Made by a program: the position numbers and the translations under genes
From: Eutreptiella sp. 'Long Island Sound 2002'
Lineage: Eukaryota > Protista > Euglenida
Direction of reading: 5' to 3'
NCBI GenBank assembly: GCA_964036045.1
Contig: OZ038378.1
Coordinates: 25,296,001-25,360,000 of the forward strand
DNA length: 64,000 nt
Shown here: one piece after another, positions 6,590-52,149 of the stretch
Position numbering within the stretch: position 1 is the first letter of the stretch
Layout of the letters: every line of letters begins with the position of its first letter
Notes under the pieces: model-generated
What the model was told of the DNA's origin: nothing
The model's database searches: none
What the model saw: only the letters and a program-made list of their open reading frames with translations

Positions 6590-7760
6590 GTCTTCTCAAG
6601 GGGATGTTGGTACGAAACAGGGCCTAAGAAAAATATCTCTGCAGGGATCTGTGCCTTTGCACGAACCCAACACCAGCAACCCATCCCCACAGGGTGCCTA
6701 TACACGTCCAATAAGAATCCTTGAAGGGGATGCAACTGGGGTGGGGAACGTGAACCATTTCACCTACAGTCACAGCGTCACAGCTCACACTTCGGACTGG
6801 CTATACTGCCTCAAGGGTTAGCATCATGACCAATGCAAATGGTATCAATGGAATTGGGATTCACAAATAAAAACGTCATGGTAACAACAAGGACACCAAA
6901 CAAATGCGACAAATGGTGACAGACATATTTTCCATTTCTGGTTTGCCGTGTTTTTCTGGACAGGCCACAAGACATATTTTTTTCTTTGAACCTGAATTTA
7001 CTTGGTTGAATGGTGCCTCATGTGCTTTACGTGCTTTGCTTTCCTTTGCAGTCGATGTTTGTCTTTACATAGAAAGAGAAACGAATTGGAAAACACCACC
7101 TTCCCCCTCCTACTTGCATGAGCATTTCCAGAATGGTGCCACCCCTTTGAGATGTAAAATTTTGACACACAACAGAGCCCCTTCTCACATGTCTTGTTTT
7201 TGTGAATGAAGGTCGGATACACCTGGTGAGAAGTGATTTGAACCCCTCACGGACATCCCTATCGGTGGAAATGGAGTTTTGAAGCTGCCGCTATGAGGCA
7301 CTTAGAGGATGTGGTGGAGACTGGACCTGTCTCCCTGCTGATGGCGCGGCCCTTCTCAGCGCACGAAACACTGTGTCTCCCTATTGTGCAGTGCATTTAT
7401 GTGCTGAAGGATCCGCAAGGGGACGGGTAATGCTCAGTGCACAAAACGGTGCGTTTTTTGACCTCCGGGCCGACACAAAACAGGACCTAAGAAAAAGGTA
7501 CCTGTTGGGGTTTGTGGCATGGTACAAACCCAACATCCGCAGAGCACCCTACAGGGTGCACAAATGAATTGGATCATCACGGAAGGGGTTGCAAAGAACA
7601 CAACATGCAAAAAAAGGCAAATGGGTGGGCACATGCCACCTACACTCCACCTACAGCCACAACGTCACAACGGAGACTGGAGGCTGGCTATGCTCCCTCA
7701 AGCGTCAGCATCATGACCAATGCGAATTGTATCAATGGAATTCGAATTCACAAATAATAA
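6590..7760 (+). repeat. Diverged direct duplication (~6590-6870 vs ~7470-7760) with Cys/His-containing peptide
   Basis: TKQGLRK...YSHSVT..WLYCLKG*HHDQCKWYQW aligns with TKQDLRK...YSHNVT..WLCSLKRQHHDQCELYQW. Confidence 0.65.
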
Positions 7761-8879
7761 GGTCATGGGAACCGCAGGAACATCAAACAAACGAGACATA
7801 TGTTCACACACATTTTTTCCGGACACGCCACATGACGTATTACATCCCAAAGGGGCGGTGAGGCTTTTCCATATGTTAATACGCCGGGGAGGAGGAGGGT
7901 GGTGTTTTCTGATTCTTTTCCCATTCTACATGAAGGCAAACATGAACATGCAAGGAATGCGAAGCACGCAAGGCACTGAGGACACCTCTAAACAAAATAA
8001 TTACTATAAATAAATGGTGCATTCAATTCTTGCAAATAAACACACAGCAGAGAGAGGGGGGTCTTTACCAAATCATTCTTCATGCTCCATTCAAATAAAC
8101 ACACAACACAATTTGCGCGGGGTGGGGTGTAGAAGAGAACTCATGAGTGGGGGGCTAGACTAGGGAAGGGCCAACCGGGGGGGGGGGTGCAAACCAATGT
8201 TGGGGGGGGGGGCATTACATTGGGGGTGTCCAAATGTGGGTTGTAGGGGGGGGGGGGTTGCATCATGGGGGAGGGGGGCTTATGGGTGCATATTGGCGGT
8301 CCATAAAAGTTTGATGTCTGATGTCTCATGGCCATCTTGGTTGCCATGCAGTATCCTCTTGGACATGAGTTTTGAACGGGGGGTTCCGCTTTTCCGTTGG
8401 AACGGAACTACACATGCACACACTCCTATACTTCCTAACAAACCACGCGCTGTGCGCCACGGTCTAGTGGAGCGAGAAAATCGCCTTCCAATTCACGAGG
8501 TGGCATAACACACCAAGCGGTTTGGATGTGGTGGTCTCCACACGCCACCTTCGACTTGCTCAAGAATGTCTTTTTGCGCCACAATGTGTGCATGTCAGTC
8601 ACACTCTTGATGATGCTAAAAACCAATCTTGTGCACCTTAACATTTTTTACCTCCACAGTGCCGTTCGGGTGAAACACCTTCACCACCTGCACCACACGC
8701 TTTTGATACTCTGTTGTCTCAGGGAAAACTTCGGCTAACATAACGTCAACTATATATATTTTTGTAGGTTAGAGGGGGACGCGGGCAGCCAAGGGTGCAT
8801 GTGCAGCTTGTTGCATAATGTCCGGCGCACTTGTTGCATGTGTCCTTTGACCCACCGCGCATCCCCTCTGTAGCCCATG

Positions 8880-9450
8880 CTCACAAGTCACTGGCTACTC
8901 GCTTGGAAATTGCATTGCAAAGCTGTGCACCACAAAGTGCATCATCCCACCCGCGACTGTGGTGAACCACAACAACTCCGGCGGAGGTGTTCGTTGGCGT
9001 GTGGCCCAACGAGTCCTGTGCAGCAGGTGGTCGGCGCTGATGATCGCGTGTGACTGTGTAGCATGGATGAATGGCTAGGTGGCGTACGTTGAAGCCAACA
9101 CCAACACAGTACTTGACAACCCACAAACAATACGATTTGAATGATTTCTCACCGGGGTTGAAAAGGGGATGCAGGCTAGTAACTACGGCTCTGCGTCGAA
9201 GTGTTGCACCTTTGAGCACGGACATACCTCACAATTGCATAACATTGTGACCCCGCTACCCCGATGGGGGGCATTCTTCGGTTCATTGGGGCGAACGAAA
9301 AAGGTTACGTGTTGCACTAATGCTAGGCGCTCGGCCTTTGCCTCGTGCTTTAGCATCGCAAAAACTTTGCGTGTCAGCCGGAGCACATTACCCTCAAACC
9401 TTTCTACAAGGTCCTCCGTGTTGGAATATACGTTTGTGGATTTGAAGTCC
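8880..9450 (-). pseudogene. Internally deleted family-A (RAG1/Transib-like) transposase relic
   Basis: EDLVERFEGNVLRLTRKVFAMLKHEAKAERLALVQ matches EDVVARFEADVLRHCRKPYALLKPEAHAERIAMVQ of ORF 54781-55626. LCNAISKRVASDL matches LCNAIVKRLGSDL at ~54.6 kb. Confidence 0.75.
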
Positions 9451-10949
9451 GCCAGGAAGGGTACACATAAAGGTCTTGCATATTAACAAGTCCACGGGAA
9501 AGTATCTTCAGGGATGGGGCCCTCACTGGGGAGTGGTTGCTGACCTACGTTGATGACCATACATACTAACTTGGAAGGCGCTCCTGAATGGGGTTATTGA
9601 TTGGACTTGCTCATTGGGCATATCAGGCTGATAACTCTTCCTCGCCTACTTTCTTAACTACTTCCAATTGGGCTGATTTCCGGCATGGGGGGGGGGGGGG
9701 ATGGCCTGGGTGCGCCAGGGCTGCCTCTCTCACATTGCACCACACCAACACAACCCTATTGCACTCTCCACCACAATGATGTGCCGGGTCGATTGTGCTT
9801 CAGTCTCCGTGCCTTCCAATGAATGATGAAGCAAAATACAACATCAAACAGGTGCCTTTCCCTTCTGTGAAATACTAATGATGGCAGCCCACAACTGCCA
9901 AACAACAGGGGGAACAACGTTTCTCTTGTACGAAAGGAGAGGTGTGATCATAGCAGGTTCAAGGTCATAACTCACCGGCCTCGCTGCCCTCGCTTCGCAC
10001 CTTTTGGTCCGCGCAAATGCCGCCTTGCCATGCGTACCAGTCGCTTTGCACCACGCCGCCGCAAGAAACGTGATTGCACGGGGCCTACACGTGGCACACC
10101 GTAAAATGTGCGCACCGCCATTTAGCGGACTGTTGATAGCCTCCGCCGAAGCAGGTTAACTTGGTCTACTTTGGCACACCTGTTTTGGACGGAGAGGAAA
10201 CAATATTCTACGAGTGCAAATAGCAGCTACACTCCGATTGGGATTGGAACTTTTATGTATGTGCATTCATCGGTGCCTTAAGCCGTTCGACATGCATGTT
10301 TGCCTTGACGTGCCCCGCGCATGCACTAGCTATCTCAATGTGTAGCCGCTCATTCTCCGCTATTAATTGCGCCACTTGACCTACCCATTGTGCATACTTG
10401 TCCGACCGTTACATATACCCGGTGTATTCAAGGTCCCCAATACCCTGCAATTGCACAGTTTTGTCCTAAAGGGTCTTGTTGTCAACTTGCAGCCACGTAA
10501 CGTTGGCCTGGAGCACGTGGGTTTCAGCACTCCACAAACAGCTTGCCTACGCGCCAGCAGCCGCACAGGAAAATGCATATGCAAGCTTGTCCACAACCTT
10601 GTCAGTGTCGCAGCAATCGCCTGCACCAACATCAATCCGGGCCCTTGCACCCCAACTCCTTCTTCGGCCTCTTCTGTTGCGGCCCCTATTAATCCCCGCA
10701 GCCCTCCTCTACTTTGGAGGGAGTACGACCACCAAGGATCCCCTTCTCCTTTCCACCAACGTACTGGACATCCTTCTGGTCCATGTACCGTACAGCCGCA
10801 GGGGGTGTGCTGTCAGTGCCAATCCGGACCACCGCATGCAGGCATGTAGCGCCCTTCCGGGCAGCCAACCCGTTTTCATACGGGACGTGCTCATTATTGG
10901 TACTACTGGGGCCGACATACACCGTGTACGTCCAAGTGTGCGCCGCCTC

Positions 10950-46000: not shown

Positions 46001-46790
46001 GCTTCCGAGGCCGCACGGGAGCACATCCCCAGGCATCAATGCGGGTAGTGCGGCGCAAACTGGGTTGAACATGTATTAAATTCTACCCTTCAAATGTGTG
46101 TGTTATGGCGACTTCCCCCTGCACCTGTATTGGAGTTACCCAAACGCTGGCGGAATTCTGCAATTCACTGGACAGTCGATCGGCCCATGCGCTTTTGCGA
46201 CAAGATAAAATAGACCTGGGCTTGGCGGACGAAGCGCTATATCTTTTGGCAGCCGCAAGGCCCCCACGACATTGCGAGCTGACCTACTTTGAACTCCATG
46301 GACAATGTTACGGTTGAAATGGGTCGGCCTTGGGCCTGCAGGAAATGCGAGTGTGCCTCTAGACCTGTGGTCTCTATGGGCACATCGTGACTTCTTTCGT
46401 GTGGGGGCACACGCAACTTCTTAGCCCCCAATGTGGTGCCTCAAAGCGGCTGTCATGCTAAGTACCCTTTTCCACGATCTTAGGCGTCACAAGTTGCCCA
46501 CCCCCCACCTGGCGCTATGGCCCACGGAAGTCCATGTTGTAATGAGGGGGAAAGTATGTGAAAAGGGGTGTTATTTTTTGGGTACCCAAACCCCCCTGGT
46601 GGCAACATGCAAAAACAAGGTGTGTATTTCAAATATATGCCATTATTTGCATTTCTGGAAACACACAGATTTTCAAAATAATGACATTCAATCACCAAAA
46701 TATAGTGTTGTTTTACATTTAGACCACTGCATTCCAGTGTGTGGGGGGGGGGGGGCTGCCTATTTTTCTCTCCCCTTTGTTCGAGGTTGA

Positions 46791-47858
46791 TCACAGAACC
46801 CCCCTATACACCACAGATGAGGGAACCCCAAACATACCTTTCATTGAAGCACACACTTCCACTTCCTTGAACGTACCCAGTGCGGGATGTAGTCCACGCT
46901 TTTCCATGGCTGCCATGGCGTCTACTGAAGGAAGACCCACAAATTTCACCAAACGCCCAACGCCACCCCACCGTTTGGCAACAGCACTCTGCACAGGAGA
47001 ACATGTGGAACACAGAAGCTGGCCGAAATTTCGGCCAGGTCGATCGACAAAACCGAATTAATACATGAAACACACCACAGTGCCTTCCTCGGCAGTAACA
47101 CCACACTCTTCAAGCATAACAGTAATGTGATGGTACAGGGTGTACTCATTGGCATCCTCATCCTCAAGCCTATCCAGGAGTAGGGACATTCGCTCCGATG
47201 TGGTGGATGCTGAGCCAGCAGTGGTCTGGATTTGATGTAAGCCTGCAAGCCGGCGCCTAGTCCGCAGGGGGCAGTCCTGTTTGACTTCATAACCACCAAA
47301 TACCAGGGTCCAATCCGGAGTCTCCATATTTTTCATCTCAAATTCAGTCTTGTGTTTTTGGGCAGCAGTGTAAACATGCTGACCCCCCAACAGAACCCAG
47401 CGAGTGGCTGTGCAACAGGAATATTCGTAACAGCAGGGTCGAAAATTCAGACGCGAAAACGGTACTATCGAGAAGAATACCACAACACACATACGAGTGA
47501 CTTTATAAAAAAGAAGATCCTGGATGTAATCCACAGGCGGGGCTGCCTTCAGATCGTCGTAGCGGCGTTGCACGCGATCATCCGAAATCCTACGGACCTG
47601 CCCAAATTTTCGGTCGTGGTCGATAATAATCTGATCCCACCGAACCTTTATTTTCGTCGTTGACGTAACCAAGTCGGATAACTTGATGGAGGATGATGAA
47701 TTTTTCTTTGGTGCGGCCTTAGGCTTCTTTTGAAGTCCCTCTGTGCTCGCCTGGTCCTCTTGAGACTGGGATTGCACTTGAGATTGCCCATTGTCTGCTG
47801 CAGGCTCACCATCTGGCGAAACAGCCATGTCCTGCGATACCCCTCCAGGCTCGGTCAT
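46791..47858 (-). CDS. ParB/Sulfiredoxin-fold protein with possible HTH (spliced: 47858-47495, 47407-47076, 46988-46791; ~297 aa, 3-prime end uncertain)
   Basis: GQVRRISDDRVQRRYDDLKAAPP...DLLFYKVT^PTRWVLLGGQHVYTAAQK resembles the ParB N-domain (QPR...l..si...Pi.v...y.ii.G.hR..A). Later STTSERMSLL and TV^SAVAKRWGGVGRLVKFVGLP are reminiscent of the ParB LnpiE helix and HTH region. Removing two GT-AG introns keeps the frame. Confidence 0.75.
46989..47075 (-). other. 87-nt spliceosomal intron 2 containing one palindrome copy (47019-47038)
   Basis: GTGTGT...TCTCCTGTGCAG, phase 0. Joins ORF 47058-47924 to ORF 46791-46994. Confidence 0.75.
47408..47494 (-). other. 87-nt spliceosomal intron 1 of the ParB-like gene
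   Basis: GTATGT...TCCTGTTGCACAG, phase 1. Removal deletes the odd hydrophobic/Cys insert MCVVVFF...CCTA from the ParB core. Confidence 0.8.
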
Positions 47859-47977
47859 AAAATAAAGGGCTACAAGGCAACATTTCATGAAGGGGAGAGT
47901 TCCCAGATAGCAAATAACAAGCACAGATCAACCAAAAAAGGACCAAAACGGACTGCCTGACAGGAAATTCGGATAAC

Positions 47978-48136
47978 CTGGCCGAAATTTCGGCCAGCAC
48001 TGCTCTGCATGTCAAACCACTGTGTACAAATACCATTCTGAGAGGCTGGCCGAAATTTCGGCCAGAACCTTAAGTCATTTGTGTTCTGGGGGTAGCCATA
48101 TGACAAAACAACAAGTCTGGCCGAAATTTCGGCCAG
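47978..48136. promoter_or_regulatory. Array of 3 perfect 20-bp palindromes upstream of the ParB-like gene
   Basis: CTGGCCGAAATTTCGGCCAG at 47978, 48046 and 48117 (period 68, 71) with non-identical spacers. The regulatory or binding role is inferred. Confidence 0.7.
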
Positions 48137-48228
48137 AAAAACACGAAACAGCAAATGGACACACCAAAATCACTGGCAATGCGTGGCAGAACCCATACCA
48201 CAGTGACAAACACAGCTGCAAACAGAAA

Positions 48229-50439
48229 TCAGTCCCAATCCTGGGTATCCACACCGATGTGTTCCGCCTCATCTAGGGCTTCAAAGGAGGCAACGCTGTC
48301 TGCATCACAATCAATATCCTGGTCACTATCACAAGAGTCGACAGCAATGGAATCATCAAGGGCGGGGGGGGGTACTGGGCGGGGGGGGTCCGGGGGGGGT
48401 ACTGGGGGGCCTCTGGCTCGGGGCTTCGGGGGTGGCTTTGGGGGCAAGGCAATTCCACTAGGAGCAGCAGCAGCAGCAGCAGGCGGTGCACGGTTGGCAG
48501 CGCGAATAGAAGCATGTGCAGTACGCAACACCCCTTGCTCGGCAGCAGTGCGGGCAGGTGCATTTGTCTGTAAAAAATCCTCAACACCCTCAGGAACCCT
48601 GGTACGCGCAACCAGATTTTGCATTGCATGCAACAGAACCACTTTTAAACGGTCTGTGGTGATTCGTGTCCTAGACATGGTACCGGGGAACGTCAAATCC
48701 TCAACTGCATCCAGTCTTCTCACCTCAACTTTATAGTCCGGAACGGGAACACAAATGGGCAGGCTCTGTGTATGGGCTGTCAAGATGAATTGTTTAAGAT
48801 TGGCAGAGAACATTGCCACGGATCTCTCAGTCAGCACACCACGCAAAACTTTCTCTCCGGGTTGGACAAGGGGAAGTGTCAGAAATAAATCAGACGACTG
48901 TTGGACACTAGTACAGGCGGTGTTGCGGCGACAGTGGGCTGAGAACCGACTCAGAAGTGCCTCACCCAGCTCCTCAGAGTGGATACACCCTAGGGAGGCG
49001 GAATGCCACTGACTCCAAAACAAAAGAGCAACGGCGGTGGTTTTCACATACTCCGTGGTTAACTGTTCCTCGGGCTTTAGGATGTTCAGCATGAGCAGTA
49101 GGGACATCTCAAGTGCCTGCTTAGCTACAATACCGGAACCTGCCCCCCGTCCCTCCCAGTTGCATTCACGAACCAAAGTCGCAATGCTGAAAGCAGCTGG
49201 ACAGTATGTGTACAGCAAAGCCTTAAGGGCTAATAACATACGCAAACCCTTGCGCTGAATGGGTGTCAAGTCCCGCTGGCTATTGAGCAGGGAAGTGACG
49301 CGCTCATCTAGTCTGCCTCTATTGGACGATGTGGCTAGCATGAGTCCAAGCAACGTCTTCTCCATATGGATGACCTTGACCTTGCGAGGGAGGATAGACC
49401 CAACCTGAAGGCTGTTCCCCTGCTCCAAAAACTTAATGAACGGCAGGAACGCCCTGTAGATCAATTCAACGCAATACTTATAGCTATGCCATACTCCGTA
49501 CACCAAAGGAAAACCCAACAGTAATTGTGGTACATTCCAGGGAACATAAGCAGCACCATAACACAGCTTAAGTGGGGCAAAGTGTATTTTCATGTCCACA
49601 AGCAGCGGAACACAGTGTCTGGTGCGGTGTTCCACACATGACAAATCAACCACGAGTTGCAAAAGCTCTTTGTGTGTGCCGGAGCGGAGCTCAGACAGGA
49701 AAAAGGGTCTCCAGTTGAGGGAACGAACATCTTTTCTGGCAATATCCAAAGGAGCACGAACCCAAACTCTCTGAATACCTTGGTTGGCAACATCAATACG
49801 ATCAAACAATGCTCTGTGTGAGCGAAAGATGTCATCTGCAACCTTTGGTACCCTGGCCTCAATTTCGGCCAGCTCCGGCAGACCCCGGTATGCAGGTAGG
49901 GCAGTAGTGTGCAAAACAGCAACAGCTGTACAGTTTAGGGTTAAGTCGGGTGAATGGGGATCAGCTCCCGACCTGTAACGCCTCAGGTTATCAAACCATA
50001 TACAAACTTGCCTACGGTGCATGGTGTTCCACAAGTTGTGTGCTGCTAGTCCAGCACGATGGTGAATGGACTCCTGCTTAGTGTTACACTGACCAAGGAC
50101 TCCTACCTTACAGCGTTGGCGGCAAGACATAATACCCCAGTTGTAACCAGACCCACAGTTAGAGTATGGGAGGGCCATACGGCGCAGCAGGCAGTATAGG
50201 GCATGGAACTGTGACAAAGATGTCATGTACCATCGTGGGGGCTTCTTCTCGGTGGCGGCGGCCTTCAACTGTGTCAGGGAGTGCCGGCTCCTGCGATTCT
50301 TCCGCAACAAGAGGCAGAATTGCAAAAGCTTTTGCAGAGTCCCACCACGTAATGCATTTCGCAACAGCCCTTTGGCTGTAGTAGCAAAAGCACCAGTAAC
50401 TGCAGCATGTACAACATTGACAGTAATAGCAAAAGACAT
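48229..50439 (-). CDS. Intact 736-aa putative DDE transposase (Academ/DUF6589-like)
   Basis: Motif order WFD150N...LLVD282MK...YGVWH318...SEELGE493A fits the DN / D / G.wH / E pattern of Academ-type RNase H-fold transposases. Pro-rich then acidic tail. Lies between TIRs. Confidence 0.65.
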   Translation of the reverse strand: MSFAITVNVVHAAVTGAFATTAKGLLRNALRGGTLQKLLQFCLLLRKNRRSRHSLTQLKAAATEKKPPRWYMTSLSQFHALYCLLRRMALPYSNCGSGYNWGIMSCRQRCKVGVLGQCNTKQESIHHRAGLAAHNLWNTMHRRQVCIWFDNLRRYRSGADPHSPDLTLNCTAVAVLHTTALPAYRGLPELAEIEARVPKVADDIFRSHRALFDRIDVANQGIQRVWVRAPLDIARKDVRSLNWRPFFLSELRSGTHKELLQLVVDLSCVEHRTRHCVPLLVDMKIHFAPLKLCYGAAYVPWNVPQLLLGFPLVYGVWHSYKYCVELIYRAFLPFIKFLEQGNSLQVGSILPRKVKVIHMEKTLLGLMLATSSNRGRLDERVTSLLNSQRDLTPIQRKGLRMLLALKALLYTYCPAAFSIATLVRECNWEGRGAGSGIVAKQALEMSLLLMLNILKPEEQLTTEYVKTTAVALLFWSQWHSASLGCIHSEELGEALLSRFSAHCRRNTACTSVQQSSDLFLTLPLVQPGEKVLRGVLTERSVAMFSANLKQFILTAHTQSLPICVPVPDYKVEVRRLDAVEDLTFPGTMSRTRITTDRLKVVLLHAMQNLVARTRVPEGVEDFLQTNAPARTAAEQGVLRTAHASIRAANRAPPAAAAAAPSGIALPPKPPPKPRARGPPVPPPDPPRPVPPPALDDSIAVDSCDSDQDIDCDADSVASFEALDEAEHIGVDTQDWD

Positions 50440-50510
50440 TAATGCTGAGACAAGAAAACAGTTATGTAGGAGTGTATGGTGTAATACTCATGAACAACGA
50501 CAATTGCAAG

Positions 50511-50811
50511 CTGGCCGAAATTTCGGCCAGGTGTGTTCAAAGGGGAAATAATTGCTTACATGTTCAAAAATAGGAAAAGCTGGCCGAAATTTCGGCCAGA
50601 CGGCCCAAAAACCAGAATATAAGTGCTTGAATAGTGAACAGACCAAAAAGCTGGCCGAAATTTCGGCCAGCCCTAAGAAAAATGAAATTAATCATGCCTA
50701 TTCACCAAGAAACCAAAAAGCTGGCCGAAATTTCGGCCAGAAGGGTCAAAAACTGCATATACACATAGTTGTTTGCAATGTTACCCAAAACCTGGCCGAA
50801 ATTTCGGCCAG
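50511..50811. promoter_or_regulatory. Array of 5 perfect 20-bp palindromes upstream of the transposase
   Basis: Copies at 50511, 50580, 50651, 50721 and 50792 (period 69, 71, 70, 71) with 49-51-bp distinct, A-tract-bearing spacers. The role is inferred. Confidence 0.7.
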
Positions 50812-52149
50812 CTTCCGAAAAACGTAAAATACAACACACTAGAAGACGGGGATACACAAGGCTAACACATCAACACGTATTTCAACGGGTGTCACACAGC
50901 TCTGCCAACAACTTTGGTCACATACGTCAAATAACATACTCAAAGTAGAAATGTAGAATATTGTCAAATCGCGCGTATACGGGGTCCTAGAGGGTGGGCA
51001 ACTTGTGACGCCTAAGACGATGGCCTCCTTGTGGAGAAAATTAGGAGGCAAATGCACAAGTCTTTGTAAAGTAGCCGGCTCCATGAATTACGTGATTGCG
51101 TGCTGCCTTTTGGCTTGCACCAAGCCCTTGGCTTGGTCCAACATTTGATAGCGCACATATTGTCAACCCTGGTTTTTAGTTGCTGCAACAAATTGCGAAC
51201 GGGGTAGCACAAGTGCCGGCAGATGCAAGCTATATTAGTAGCCCTCAGATAATTGTCACACCAATCCAATCTTTGTCATAGATTGCGAAATGTTTGAATC
51301 TATTAGGTCCTAGAATTGCGCCATCACCCAATGTGGTGGCAAATTTCGTCCTGCATTTTATCTCCGCCATTGTCATTATAAAAGCTCTCAACGTGTGTTT
51401 CGCAGGATCACTTGGATAGGGTGCCTTGGCAATATGTTCAGTCCTTTTTTTGGCGGGTGCACGGCCATGGCTTATTCATGGCCCATTTTGGGCACCATGT
51501 ACACCTCCGGCGGTTTCATCCGGCTTCTTGGAGCGCCATAGCTAGGGCCTCTAGGGGATGGAAGCATTTGGAACCCAAAACGCCGCTTGTACGTATATTT
51601 TGTGATGCTGCGCCTGACCCACACTAACAAGGTGCCTACCTTTTGGGTTTGTGGGGGCCTTTGGGGCCCAAACTTTGCAGGGTCCCGGTCTTGGTGATTC
51701 GCAACAGCCTGTTGAACTTTATGGGGCATTTTGTGCACTGGATGAGATGCATAAATATAGAGGAAAATATTTACGATTGGTTCTGAACAACAGGGGCGCA
51801 TTGGCCCTACTTTGCAATGATAGGACCGCCTCGCGCCTTGCGGCGCAACACGGAAGATTACGATGTGGTGCCCATCGCTAAAGACCTACATTAAAATCAA
51901 TATGGTTAAAAATCAAATTTTTCAATTCTGAATAAATTCAAGGGGTTAAAAATGAGGTTGCCAAAAATTAACATGTTAACGCGATCTTGGGTCATTTGCA
52001 CTGCGTTGTTTTTGTGCATATTGTGCCCCATCAGGTGGCTTGGTTGATCAAGTGGTGCAAAACAGGATGCTAAAGGGGTTCCATAGTCTCTAGGGTAGGT
52101 AAGTAGGCCCACACACCCCTCCCTAGTGCCCCCACGCACCCCACTCCCA

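Follow-up and report, generated by a model that had tools for sequence, protein, structure and literature searches.

A high-copy transposon of a probable euglenid encodes a ParB-type protein and carries family-specific palindromes that this protein may read

Proteins of the bacterial ParB family (Spo0J/ParB, Noc, KorB and SopB, with their respective sites parS, NBS, OB and sopC) combine a ParB/Srx N domain with a following helical helix-turn-helix (HTH) domain, and their sites are short perfect inverted repeats present in many copies, some of them in tandem. KorB belongs to the ParB family and is a repressor; the palindromic operators to which it binds are found at many promoters, and the F-plasmid centromere sopC consists of arrayed inverted repeats. 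ParB-like accessory proteins have also been described from algal cut-and-paste transposons. Red-algal Plavaka (EnSpm/CACTA) elements encode PAG3, in which a weak ParB-like N domain (HHpred E 0.29) is fused to a 2-oxoglutarate (2OG) oxygenase; tandem inverted-repeat arrays adjoin the PAG3 gene, and its authors propose that the protein binds self elements (bioRxiv 10.1101/2025.02.11.637652). The Ectocarpus transposon Sola1-1_Ec32 carries a ParB-like plus methyltransferase gene (PMC12477816) and chlorophytes have ParB-HTH-Dam fusions (PMC4738411). Here we analyze a 64-kb stretch of contig OZ038378.1 (the window), deposited as Eutreptiella sp., which harbors at positions 46479–51016 a transposon with terminal inverted repeats (TIRs), a putative transposase gene, a gene for a ParB-type protein and nine perfect copies of a 20-bp palindrome. 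Palindromes of this kind differ between families of the element. In our preferred reading, to which we assign a probability of about 0.58, they are read by the ParB-like protein and serve as a self-marking platform for the other products of the element. A first-pass annotation of this DNA knew of no such pairing in a eukaryotic cut-and-paste transposon; the algal elements provide precedents for the protein, once beside inverted-repeat arrays.

The locus resembles the bacterial systems in its order of domains, in its short perfect inverted repeats, many in number and partly in tandem, and in having sites upstream of genes as KorB does. It differs in that the site is 20 bp long rather than 13–16 bp, the protein has no Pfam ParB_N or HTH_ParB match, contains GGQH in place of GERR and lacks a ParA partner, and the gene, which has spliceosomal-type introns, resides in a eukaryotic TIR transposon. 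With PAG3, compared here by its description only, it shares the accessory protein of a eukaryotic cut-and-paste transposon, the ParB-like N-terminal domain and the neighboring inverted-repeat arrays. However, Plavaka elements are 17–19 kb long and encode a CACTA-type transposase, whereas in the present element a stand-alone protein of ~330 amino acids (aa), with no fused oxygenase and with strong fold evidence, accompanies a DUF6589-like transposase and a 5-bp target-site duplication (TSD) in a probable euglenid host. The algal ParB-methyltransferase proteins likewise place a ParB-type module on eukaryotic DNA transposons and are proposed, in the excerpts considered, to target self sequence (PMC12477816, PMC4738411); the element studied here has no methyltransferase domain, and those excerpts describe no cognate repeat arrays for the algal elements. 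One AlphaFold DB neighbor of our structural model (described below) carries the annotation DNA methylase N-4/N-6 protein. Functional analogs can be named as well. En/Spm TnpA binds subterminal motifs. The VANC anti-silencing proteins of Arabidopsis VANDAL elements have target motifs that form tandem repeats differing between related families (PMC5735166). Like the ParB-like protein, VANC is an element-encoded accessory protein associated with short, family-specific motifs multiplied in non-coding parts, but the folds of VANC and TnpA are unrelated to that of the ParB-like protein and the VANC motifs are non-palindromic. What is new here is the host lineage, the unrelated transposase with its 5-bp TSD, a stand-alone ParB-type protein, the strength of the fold evidence, and a family-specific series of palindromes with a conserved core and phasing.

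In gene orientation, the undeleted form of the element consists of a TIR, five palindromes, the putative transposase gene, three palindromes, the ParB-like gene with a palindrome in its intron 2, one palindrome, a third gene, three palindromes and the second TIR. Exact copies of CTGGCCGAAATTTCGGCCAG start at 47019, 47978, 48046, 48117, 50511, 50580, 50651, 50721 and 50792 of the window. The claim of nine identical palindromes, all within the element and none elsewhere in the window, was borne out by a search of the 64 kb with up to three mismatches, which added a single two-mismatch copy, CTGGCCTCAATTTCGGCCAG (49853–49872); shuffled sequence is expected to yield 0 matches. This degenerate copy overlaps the coding region of the transposase, in which it is translated as LAEIEA; it could be either a relic or a weak site in the interior of the element. 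Five of the perfect copies form an array upstream of the transposase ATG (50511–50811), with start-to-start spacings of 69, 71, 70 and 71 bp and unrelated spacers of 49–51 bp, and three form a second array between the transposase stop codon and the ParB-like gene (47978–48136; spacings 68 and 71 bp). The mutual similarity of all window spacers (48–51 bp) is 0.54, compared to 0.54 ± 0.05 for shuffled sequence, and the nine palindromes are all identical. Tandem duplication as the source of this identity was rejected because the spacers are unrelated.

The same architecture is found in six families, the proteins of which are roughly 25–55% identical to those of the window copy. Arrays occupy conserved positions: before the transposase gene, in the gap between it and the ParB-like gene, in the introns of the latter, and before and after the third gene. 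The first-pass annotation had proposed to look for co-occurrence and covariation of palindrome and gene among related elements, and each of the six families indeed has its own 20-bp palindrome at these places. The palindrome is CTGGC-CGAAATTTCG-GCCAG in the window copy, L003 and L001; CTGGG-CGAAATTTCG-CCCAG, mostly as decayed copies, in L039 and L002; CTGAC-TGAAATTTCA-GTCAG, a single and apparently CpG-decayed copy, in L038; AGACC-CGAAATTTCG-GGTCT, in nine copies, in the metagenome contig L004; CCATT-CGAAATTTCG-AATGG, with five perfect copies and thirteen retaining the core, in L037; and CTGGT-CCGATATCGG-ACCAG, i.e., CTGGTCCGATATCGGACCAG, in the metagenome contig L036. The arms differ between families symmetrically, and the central ten bases, CGAAATTTCG, are common to four of the six families, or to five once the CpG decay in L038 is reversed. 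Start-to-start spacing is 67–71 bp in four families; in L037 it is 77–79 and ~30 bp, and one pair of copies in L036 is 28 bp apart. In the fully delimited loci (window, L001, L003 and L037) every copy of the palindrome is located within the element. L001 is a 3.6-kb non-autonomous derivative, 75–80% identical, which lacks the transposase and third genes yet has 17 palindromes, 16 of them perfect over 18 bp. These comparisons provide strong evidence that the sequence and spacing of the palindromes are under selection as cis-acting sites.

These data also bear on a narrower explanation, in which the ParB-like protein binds the palindromes purely as a KorB-like repressor, with the palindromes as operators of the three genes and no role in transposition or chromatin. 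Arrays are indeed located directly upstream of the transposase gene, the ParB-like gene and the third gene, and KorB is among the structural matches given below. However, L001 has no intact genes and still keeps and multiplies perfect palindromes, and arrays are also present after the last gene and within introns. We therefore regard a purely repressive role as quite unlikely.

In the older families (L038 8799; L039 4740–10335; L002 4709–4890) palindromes often depart from the consensus at CpG, with CG changed to TG or CA. This decay would fit cytosine methylation of the palindromes in this genome. A metagenome scan for two CCGAAATTTCGG cores 50–70 bp apart returned 27 loci, none of which contained the genes of the element; these are unrelated repeats, and thus the 12-bp core alone is not diagnostic. 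Four metagenome contigs of 7–13 kb and 52–55% GC (L013 1635–1715, L014 9395–9475, L032 7661–7741 and L034 1614–1694) share a different conserved locus, without the genes of the element, in which two copies of (A)GGGCCGAAATTTCGGCCCT are located 69 bp apart.

To gain insight into the product of the second gene, we obtained an AlphaFold2 model of its homolog P0118 with the family alignment; P0118 is linked to the window protein by homology, as the spliced window protein is colinear with it (31% identity over 270 residues; HMMER E 3e-15). The model has a mean pLDDT of 82.9 and a pTM of 0.73, with residues 70–280 mostly above 90. In a Foldseek search of the PDB, nearly all of the top 50 matches have the ParB/Srx fold, the best with an E of 1e-5 over ~200 aligned columns. 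The matches comprise ParB from M. xanthus, Caulobacter and B. subtilis, Noc, KorB, PadC, Spo0J, pNOB8 ParB, sulfiredoxin and SbnI. VIA-align overlays the N domain on that of M. xanthus ParB with a Z of 10.3 and a root mean square deviation (rmsd) of 2.5 Å for 95 residues (22–24% identity) and also matches sulfiredoxin and a serine kinase. Alignments to pNOB8 ParB-N (5k5d) and the Caulobacter ParB-parS complex (6t1f), with Z values of 8.6–8.9, extend over 165–197 residues, and therefore the helical DNA-binding domain is matched too, with more modest scores. In the ESM Atlas, a shape search placed clusters with ParB_N plus HTH_ParB nearest. Thus, the ParB fold that had been proposed from the sequence was recovered by structure search with a confident model, and the data support a second gene product that is a stand-alone ParB-type protein, with a predicted ParB/Srx N domain and a predicted helical ParB-like DNA-binding domain.

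The neighbors of the P0118 model in AlphaFold DB are first uncharacterized proteins with eukaryote-style accessions, followed by bacterial ParB, Noc and ParB-nuclease proteins. The top clusters, A0A7M7HL81, A0A7M7N1A7, A7RT40, A0A6J8CMZ4 and A0A388LX61, are large and uncharacterized and rank ahead of bacterial ParB; one of them is annotated as Tudor-domain-containing, and another is the methylase mentioned above. This ranking suggests, at the level of predicted structures, a wider set of eukaryotic ParB-like proteins. By protein-language-model features, the protein encoded at 47058–47924 is nearest to fungal DUF3723 clusters (score 0.93), and Pfam DUF3723 gave no match to the ParB-like open reading frame (ORF). 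DUF3723 is a conserved accessory gene of the Starship giant transposons and its function is listed as unknown (PMC9156397); it may be another ParB-like transposon accessory protein.

The N domain departs from ParB in one respect that the first-pass annotation had already flagged, namely the absence of the GERR arginines. The best single-sequence match to Caulobacter ParB (E 0.75, non-significant) is a weak alignment in which GGQH falls opposite GERR and GQVR opposite the QPR box. In the family consensus, box II reads (G/A)GQH followed by a hydrophobic residue, and the CTP-binding arginines of GERRxRA are absent. CTP-clamp chemistry is doubtful because GGQH replaces the GERR arginines. We take GGQH to be closer to the sulfiredoxin/DGQHR type of N domain than to the ParB type.

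That resemblance can be counted in favor of a different assignment of the sites, in which the palindromes are bound by the transposase, as subterminal or internal enhancers, or by the third protein, and the ParB-like protein has another task, such as nucleotide-dependent or nuclease chemistry of the kind known from other ParB/Srx proteins. Binding to subterminal repeats is common among transposases (Ac, P, En/Spm), sulfiredoxin and serine kinases are found among the structural matches, and both other genes co-diverge with the palindromes as the ParB-like gene does. On the other hand, the TIR and the palindrome share nothing, the arrays are not limited to the ends of the element, and the ParB-like protein has a predicted ParB-type helical DNA-binding domain. 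In addition, two short metagenome contigs, L004 and L036, contain a ParB-like gene and palindromes, and in L004 also the third gene, but no transposase homolog; this is a weak point, as these contigs are too short to reveal a transposase. The genes adjacent to the ParB-like genes of L004 and L006 are not transposase homologs either. Together these features make reading of the sites by the transposase or the third protein unlikely.

We favor reading by the ParB-like protein, which is the sole product of the element with a recognized DNA-binding fold; the dyad symmetry of the sites would also fit a dimeric HTH protein. Dimers of the ParB-like protein would bind the family-specific 20-bp palindromes, and the sites arrayed at ~70 bp near both ends, before each gene and in the introns of the ParB-like gene itself would give rise to a nucleoprotein coat that marks the DNA as self. 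The coat could then recruit or organize the transposase, the third protein or both on copies with the matching palindrome, which would promote transposition of those copies or keep them active. Repression or tuning of the promoters of the element might follow as a by-product. Such a mode of action would be akin to that of En/Spm TnpA or VANDAL VANC, executed by a ParB/parS-type pair, and would be unlike a partition system. A self-marking platform is favored because derivatives devoid of genes retain and amplify the sites, which are distributed along the full length of the element.

A bolder version, which we put forward as tentative and consider on balance doubtful, is that an arginine-less ParB and its palindrome arrays constitute a portable self-recognition code of an unclassified transposon superfamily in euglenids, characterized by a DUF6589-like transposase, a 5-bp TSD and CTTAG termini. 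Protein and site would co-evolve so that each family mobilizes or protects its own copies, and the third gene would be a recruited effector, by analogy with the methyltransferase and oxygenase domains that form fusions with ParB in algal transposons. If the ParB-like protein does read the palindromes, the element would represent a compact and readily testable eukaryotic transposon that uses a bacterial-type ParB/parS pair to distinguish self from host DNA, and the six families, alike in architecture but distinct in their palindrome arms, would provide natural specificity variants that are already available. It would also extend the ParB-type cargo of algal transposons to another eukaryotic supergroup, to another transposase and to an enzyme-free version, which would suggest that selection acts on the DNA-targeting module as such. 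Finally, it would provide an entry point to a transposon superfamily with a DUF6589-like transposase and to the role of an arginine-less ParB N domain.

Several observations weigh against reading of the palindromes by the ParB-like protein. Pfam searches (E <= 1) of the window ORFs, distant homologs and 39 aligned family members found no ParB_N (PF02195), HTH_ParB or other credible family, and sequence and profile searches of the PDB with the ParB-like family returned nothing significant. As the CTP-binding arginines are lacking, ParB-like spreading or clamping is unsupported. RNA-library contigs on the element contain zero splice joints and read through both introns of the ParB-like gene unspliced; these contigs may be DNA or unspliced RNA, and transcription is not securely shown by them. 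The window copy of the gene is truncated and may be inactive. The transposase to be recruited is itself putative, as its identity rests on the TIR/TSD context, acidic residues and a DUF6589 likeness in language-model features and shape. Moreover, the transposase, ParB-like and third genes co-diverge in the same-genome families that show all three, so that covariation cannot tell which of the proteins reads the palindrome. Lastly, each palindrome can fold into an 8-bp stem with a 4-nt loop (-6.6 to -8.7 kcal/mol).

This last property raises the prospect that the palindromes act as nucleic-acid hairpins or cruciforms, in transcript processing or termination, intron folding, small-RNA precursors or replication pausing, with no binder encoded by the element. 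Symmetric changes in the arms also keep the stem, and copies are found in introns and between genes. However, the best-conserved part is the central CGAAATTTCG, i.e., the loop and the loop-proximal stem, imperfect copies disrupt pairing and make no use of wobble pairs, and Rfam searches gave no family at threshold, with hairpin matches only far below it. The fixed spacing of ~70 bp and the retention of sites in gene-less derivatives would also be left unexplained. A hairpin function without a protein partner thus appears very unlikely, and binding by the ParB-like protein remains the reading that we prefer.

The boundaries of the element were established by alignment with other copies from the same ENA assembly (ERZ25074135). 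Its 25-bp TIRs begin with CTTAGG; the left one, CTTAGGCGTCACAAGTTGCCCACCC (46479–46503, plus strand), is the 3' end in gene orientation, and the right one (50992–51016, minus strand) is its perfect inverted match. The pair is unique within the window. The flanking TSD, ACGAT, can be read directly off the sequence at 46474–46478 and 51017–51021. The first-pass annotation correctly recognized a TIR-bounded element with perfect TIRs and assigned these a length of 26 bp, with a CGA duplication. We rejected the 26-bp TIR and 3-bp TSD because the first base of such a TIR differs among copies (T, T and G) and because three independent insertions have flanks that agree over five bases (window, ACGAT; L001, TATGT; L037, ACTTG). 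These insertions span two families, L037 belonging to a diverged one with a TIR that also begins with CTTAG. Near-identical copies number in the hundreds, with protein clusters of 267 members for the 736-aa ORF and 248 members, and the summed depth of the element in read contigs is very high. Apart from three short contigs, every match in word-based protein searches was a copy from a single ENA assembly, and a profile search revealed no relatives more distant than these. With TIRs, a TSD of fixed length and copies at many sites, the element is a real, high-copy cut-and-paste DNA transposon of a probable euglenid.

The ParB-like gene is located on the minus strand. In exon 1 (47495–47858), a low-complexity N terminus precedes the first half of the ParB/Srx domain, which includes the GQVR motif. 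Intron 1 (47408–47494; GTATGT..CAG, 87 nt) is in frame; the intronless homologs P0118, P0159, P0168 and P0169 lack it. Exon 2 (47076–47407) carries the GGQHVY motif, completes the ParB/Srx N domain and also encodes the initial helices of the DNA-binding domain. Intron 2 (46989–47075; 87 nt, GT..AG) contains the palindrome at 47019–47038. The last two helices of the DNA-binding domain are encoded by the 44 codons of exon 3 (46857–46988), which align with P0118 residues 238–283. An exhaustive HMMER search identified 84 relatives of the protein, among them intronless full-length homologs from metagenomes (P0118, P0159, P0168, P0169 and P0140). In diverged copies conservation ends exactly at both donor sites, and the positions of the introns are conserved across families; exon 1 has a dN/dS of 0.34 against the L001 subfamily. 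The existence of the two introns is thus supported by comparative evidence. The family palindrome is located in intron 2 in the window copy, L037 and L036 and in intron 1 in the L001 type and L036, the intronic copies of other loci being at L036 1068 and 1458 and L037 8640. Of the intron-bearing second gene that had been reported from the window, the GGQHVY gene and both introns stand, as judged by alignment to the intronless homolog, and its completeness does not, as the C terminus has been deleted.

Comparison with L003 (98.5% identical) revealed that 1,993 bp are absent from the window copy exactly at 46856|46855. Lost with this segment were at least 55 aa from the C terminus of the ParB-like protein, the whole third gene and four further palindromes. 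In L003 the extra stretch prolongs the frame of the second gene with sequence that shares homology with the C-terminal ends of distant members of the family, whereas in the window 276 homologous residues are followed by 21 unrelated codons and a stop (46791–46856, minus strand). Where read contigs part from the window copy at 46855/46856, their overhanging ends run on as in L003; contigs from libraries of estuary metatranscriptomes are among them. The undeleted form of ~6.5 kb is therefore the common one. These alignments indicate that the window element (46479–51016) arose by internal deletion from an element of roughly 6.5 kb; the alternative that it is complete was rejected, since it lacks the 1,993 bp of L003.

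The third gene is located 3' of the ParB-like gene in every full element, at 7403 to ~8670 in L003, and is conserved in L004 (1935–3206), L037 (~9140–10270) and L038 and L039 (~8840–9780). Its motifs include GSW.W.EE..WPP and VP.(F/V)(I/V)AG, and Pfam and Atlas searches yielded no recognizable relatives. Its product also bears on whether the ParB-like protein and the palindromes form a true partition or tethering system that segregates or tethers excised copies, as in plasmid ParABS. A ParB fold together with arrayed inverted repeats is reminiscent of F-plasmid sopC. However, the element encodes no recognizable ParA-type ATPase, the third gene being without Pfam or Atlas relatives, the CTP-binding arginines are missing, and the copies are chromosomal and flanked by TSDs. 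We consider partition extremely improbable.

The 736-aa ORF (48229–50439, minus strand) is intact, as the first-pass annotation had noted of a transposase-like frame, and is found in hundreds of near-identical copies as well as in diverged paralogs. Conserved acidic residues are D150 (in W-F-D150-N), D282 (in D282-M-K) and E489/E490/E493. Its language-model features are nearest to those of fungal DUF6589 clusters (score 0.92, 183/256 features shared). The AlphaFold model of this ORF is poor (pLDDT 46), so that fold searches with it provide only hints: a shape search ranked DUF6589 first (TM 0.40/0.49 over 380 residues), followed by bacterial ISL3/ISKra4 DDE transposases with TM values below 0.5, and Foldseek against the PDB found nothing significant, the top match being Hermes (E 0.2). 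Pfam DUF6589 (PF20231) gave zero matches at E <= 1 for the window ORF or any family member. Among known groups, the likeness in features and shape points to the DUF6589 proteins of fungi, alongside which the Academ superfamily was considered. Academ TSDs are 3–4 bp (AcademX) or 9–10 bp (AcademH), and the second ORF of these elements encodes an XPG nuclease or a helicase; in contrast, the element studied here has a 5-bp TSD and, besides its transposase, a ParB-like and a third gene, neither of which encodes XPG or a helicase. We thus refer to the product of the 736-aa ORF as the putative transposase of an unclassified superfamily.

The element was also observed in contigs from estuary metatranscriptomes (runs X1–X3), which bear it at 95–99% identity to window positions 46478–51017 and may derive from RNA or from contaminating DNA. 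At 46856 these contigs match the undeleted, L003-like form, so that the estuary is home to a close relative of the source organism.

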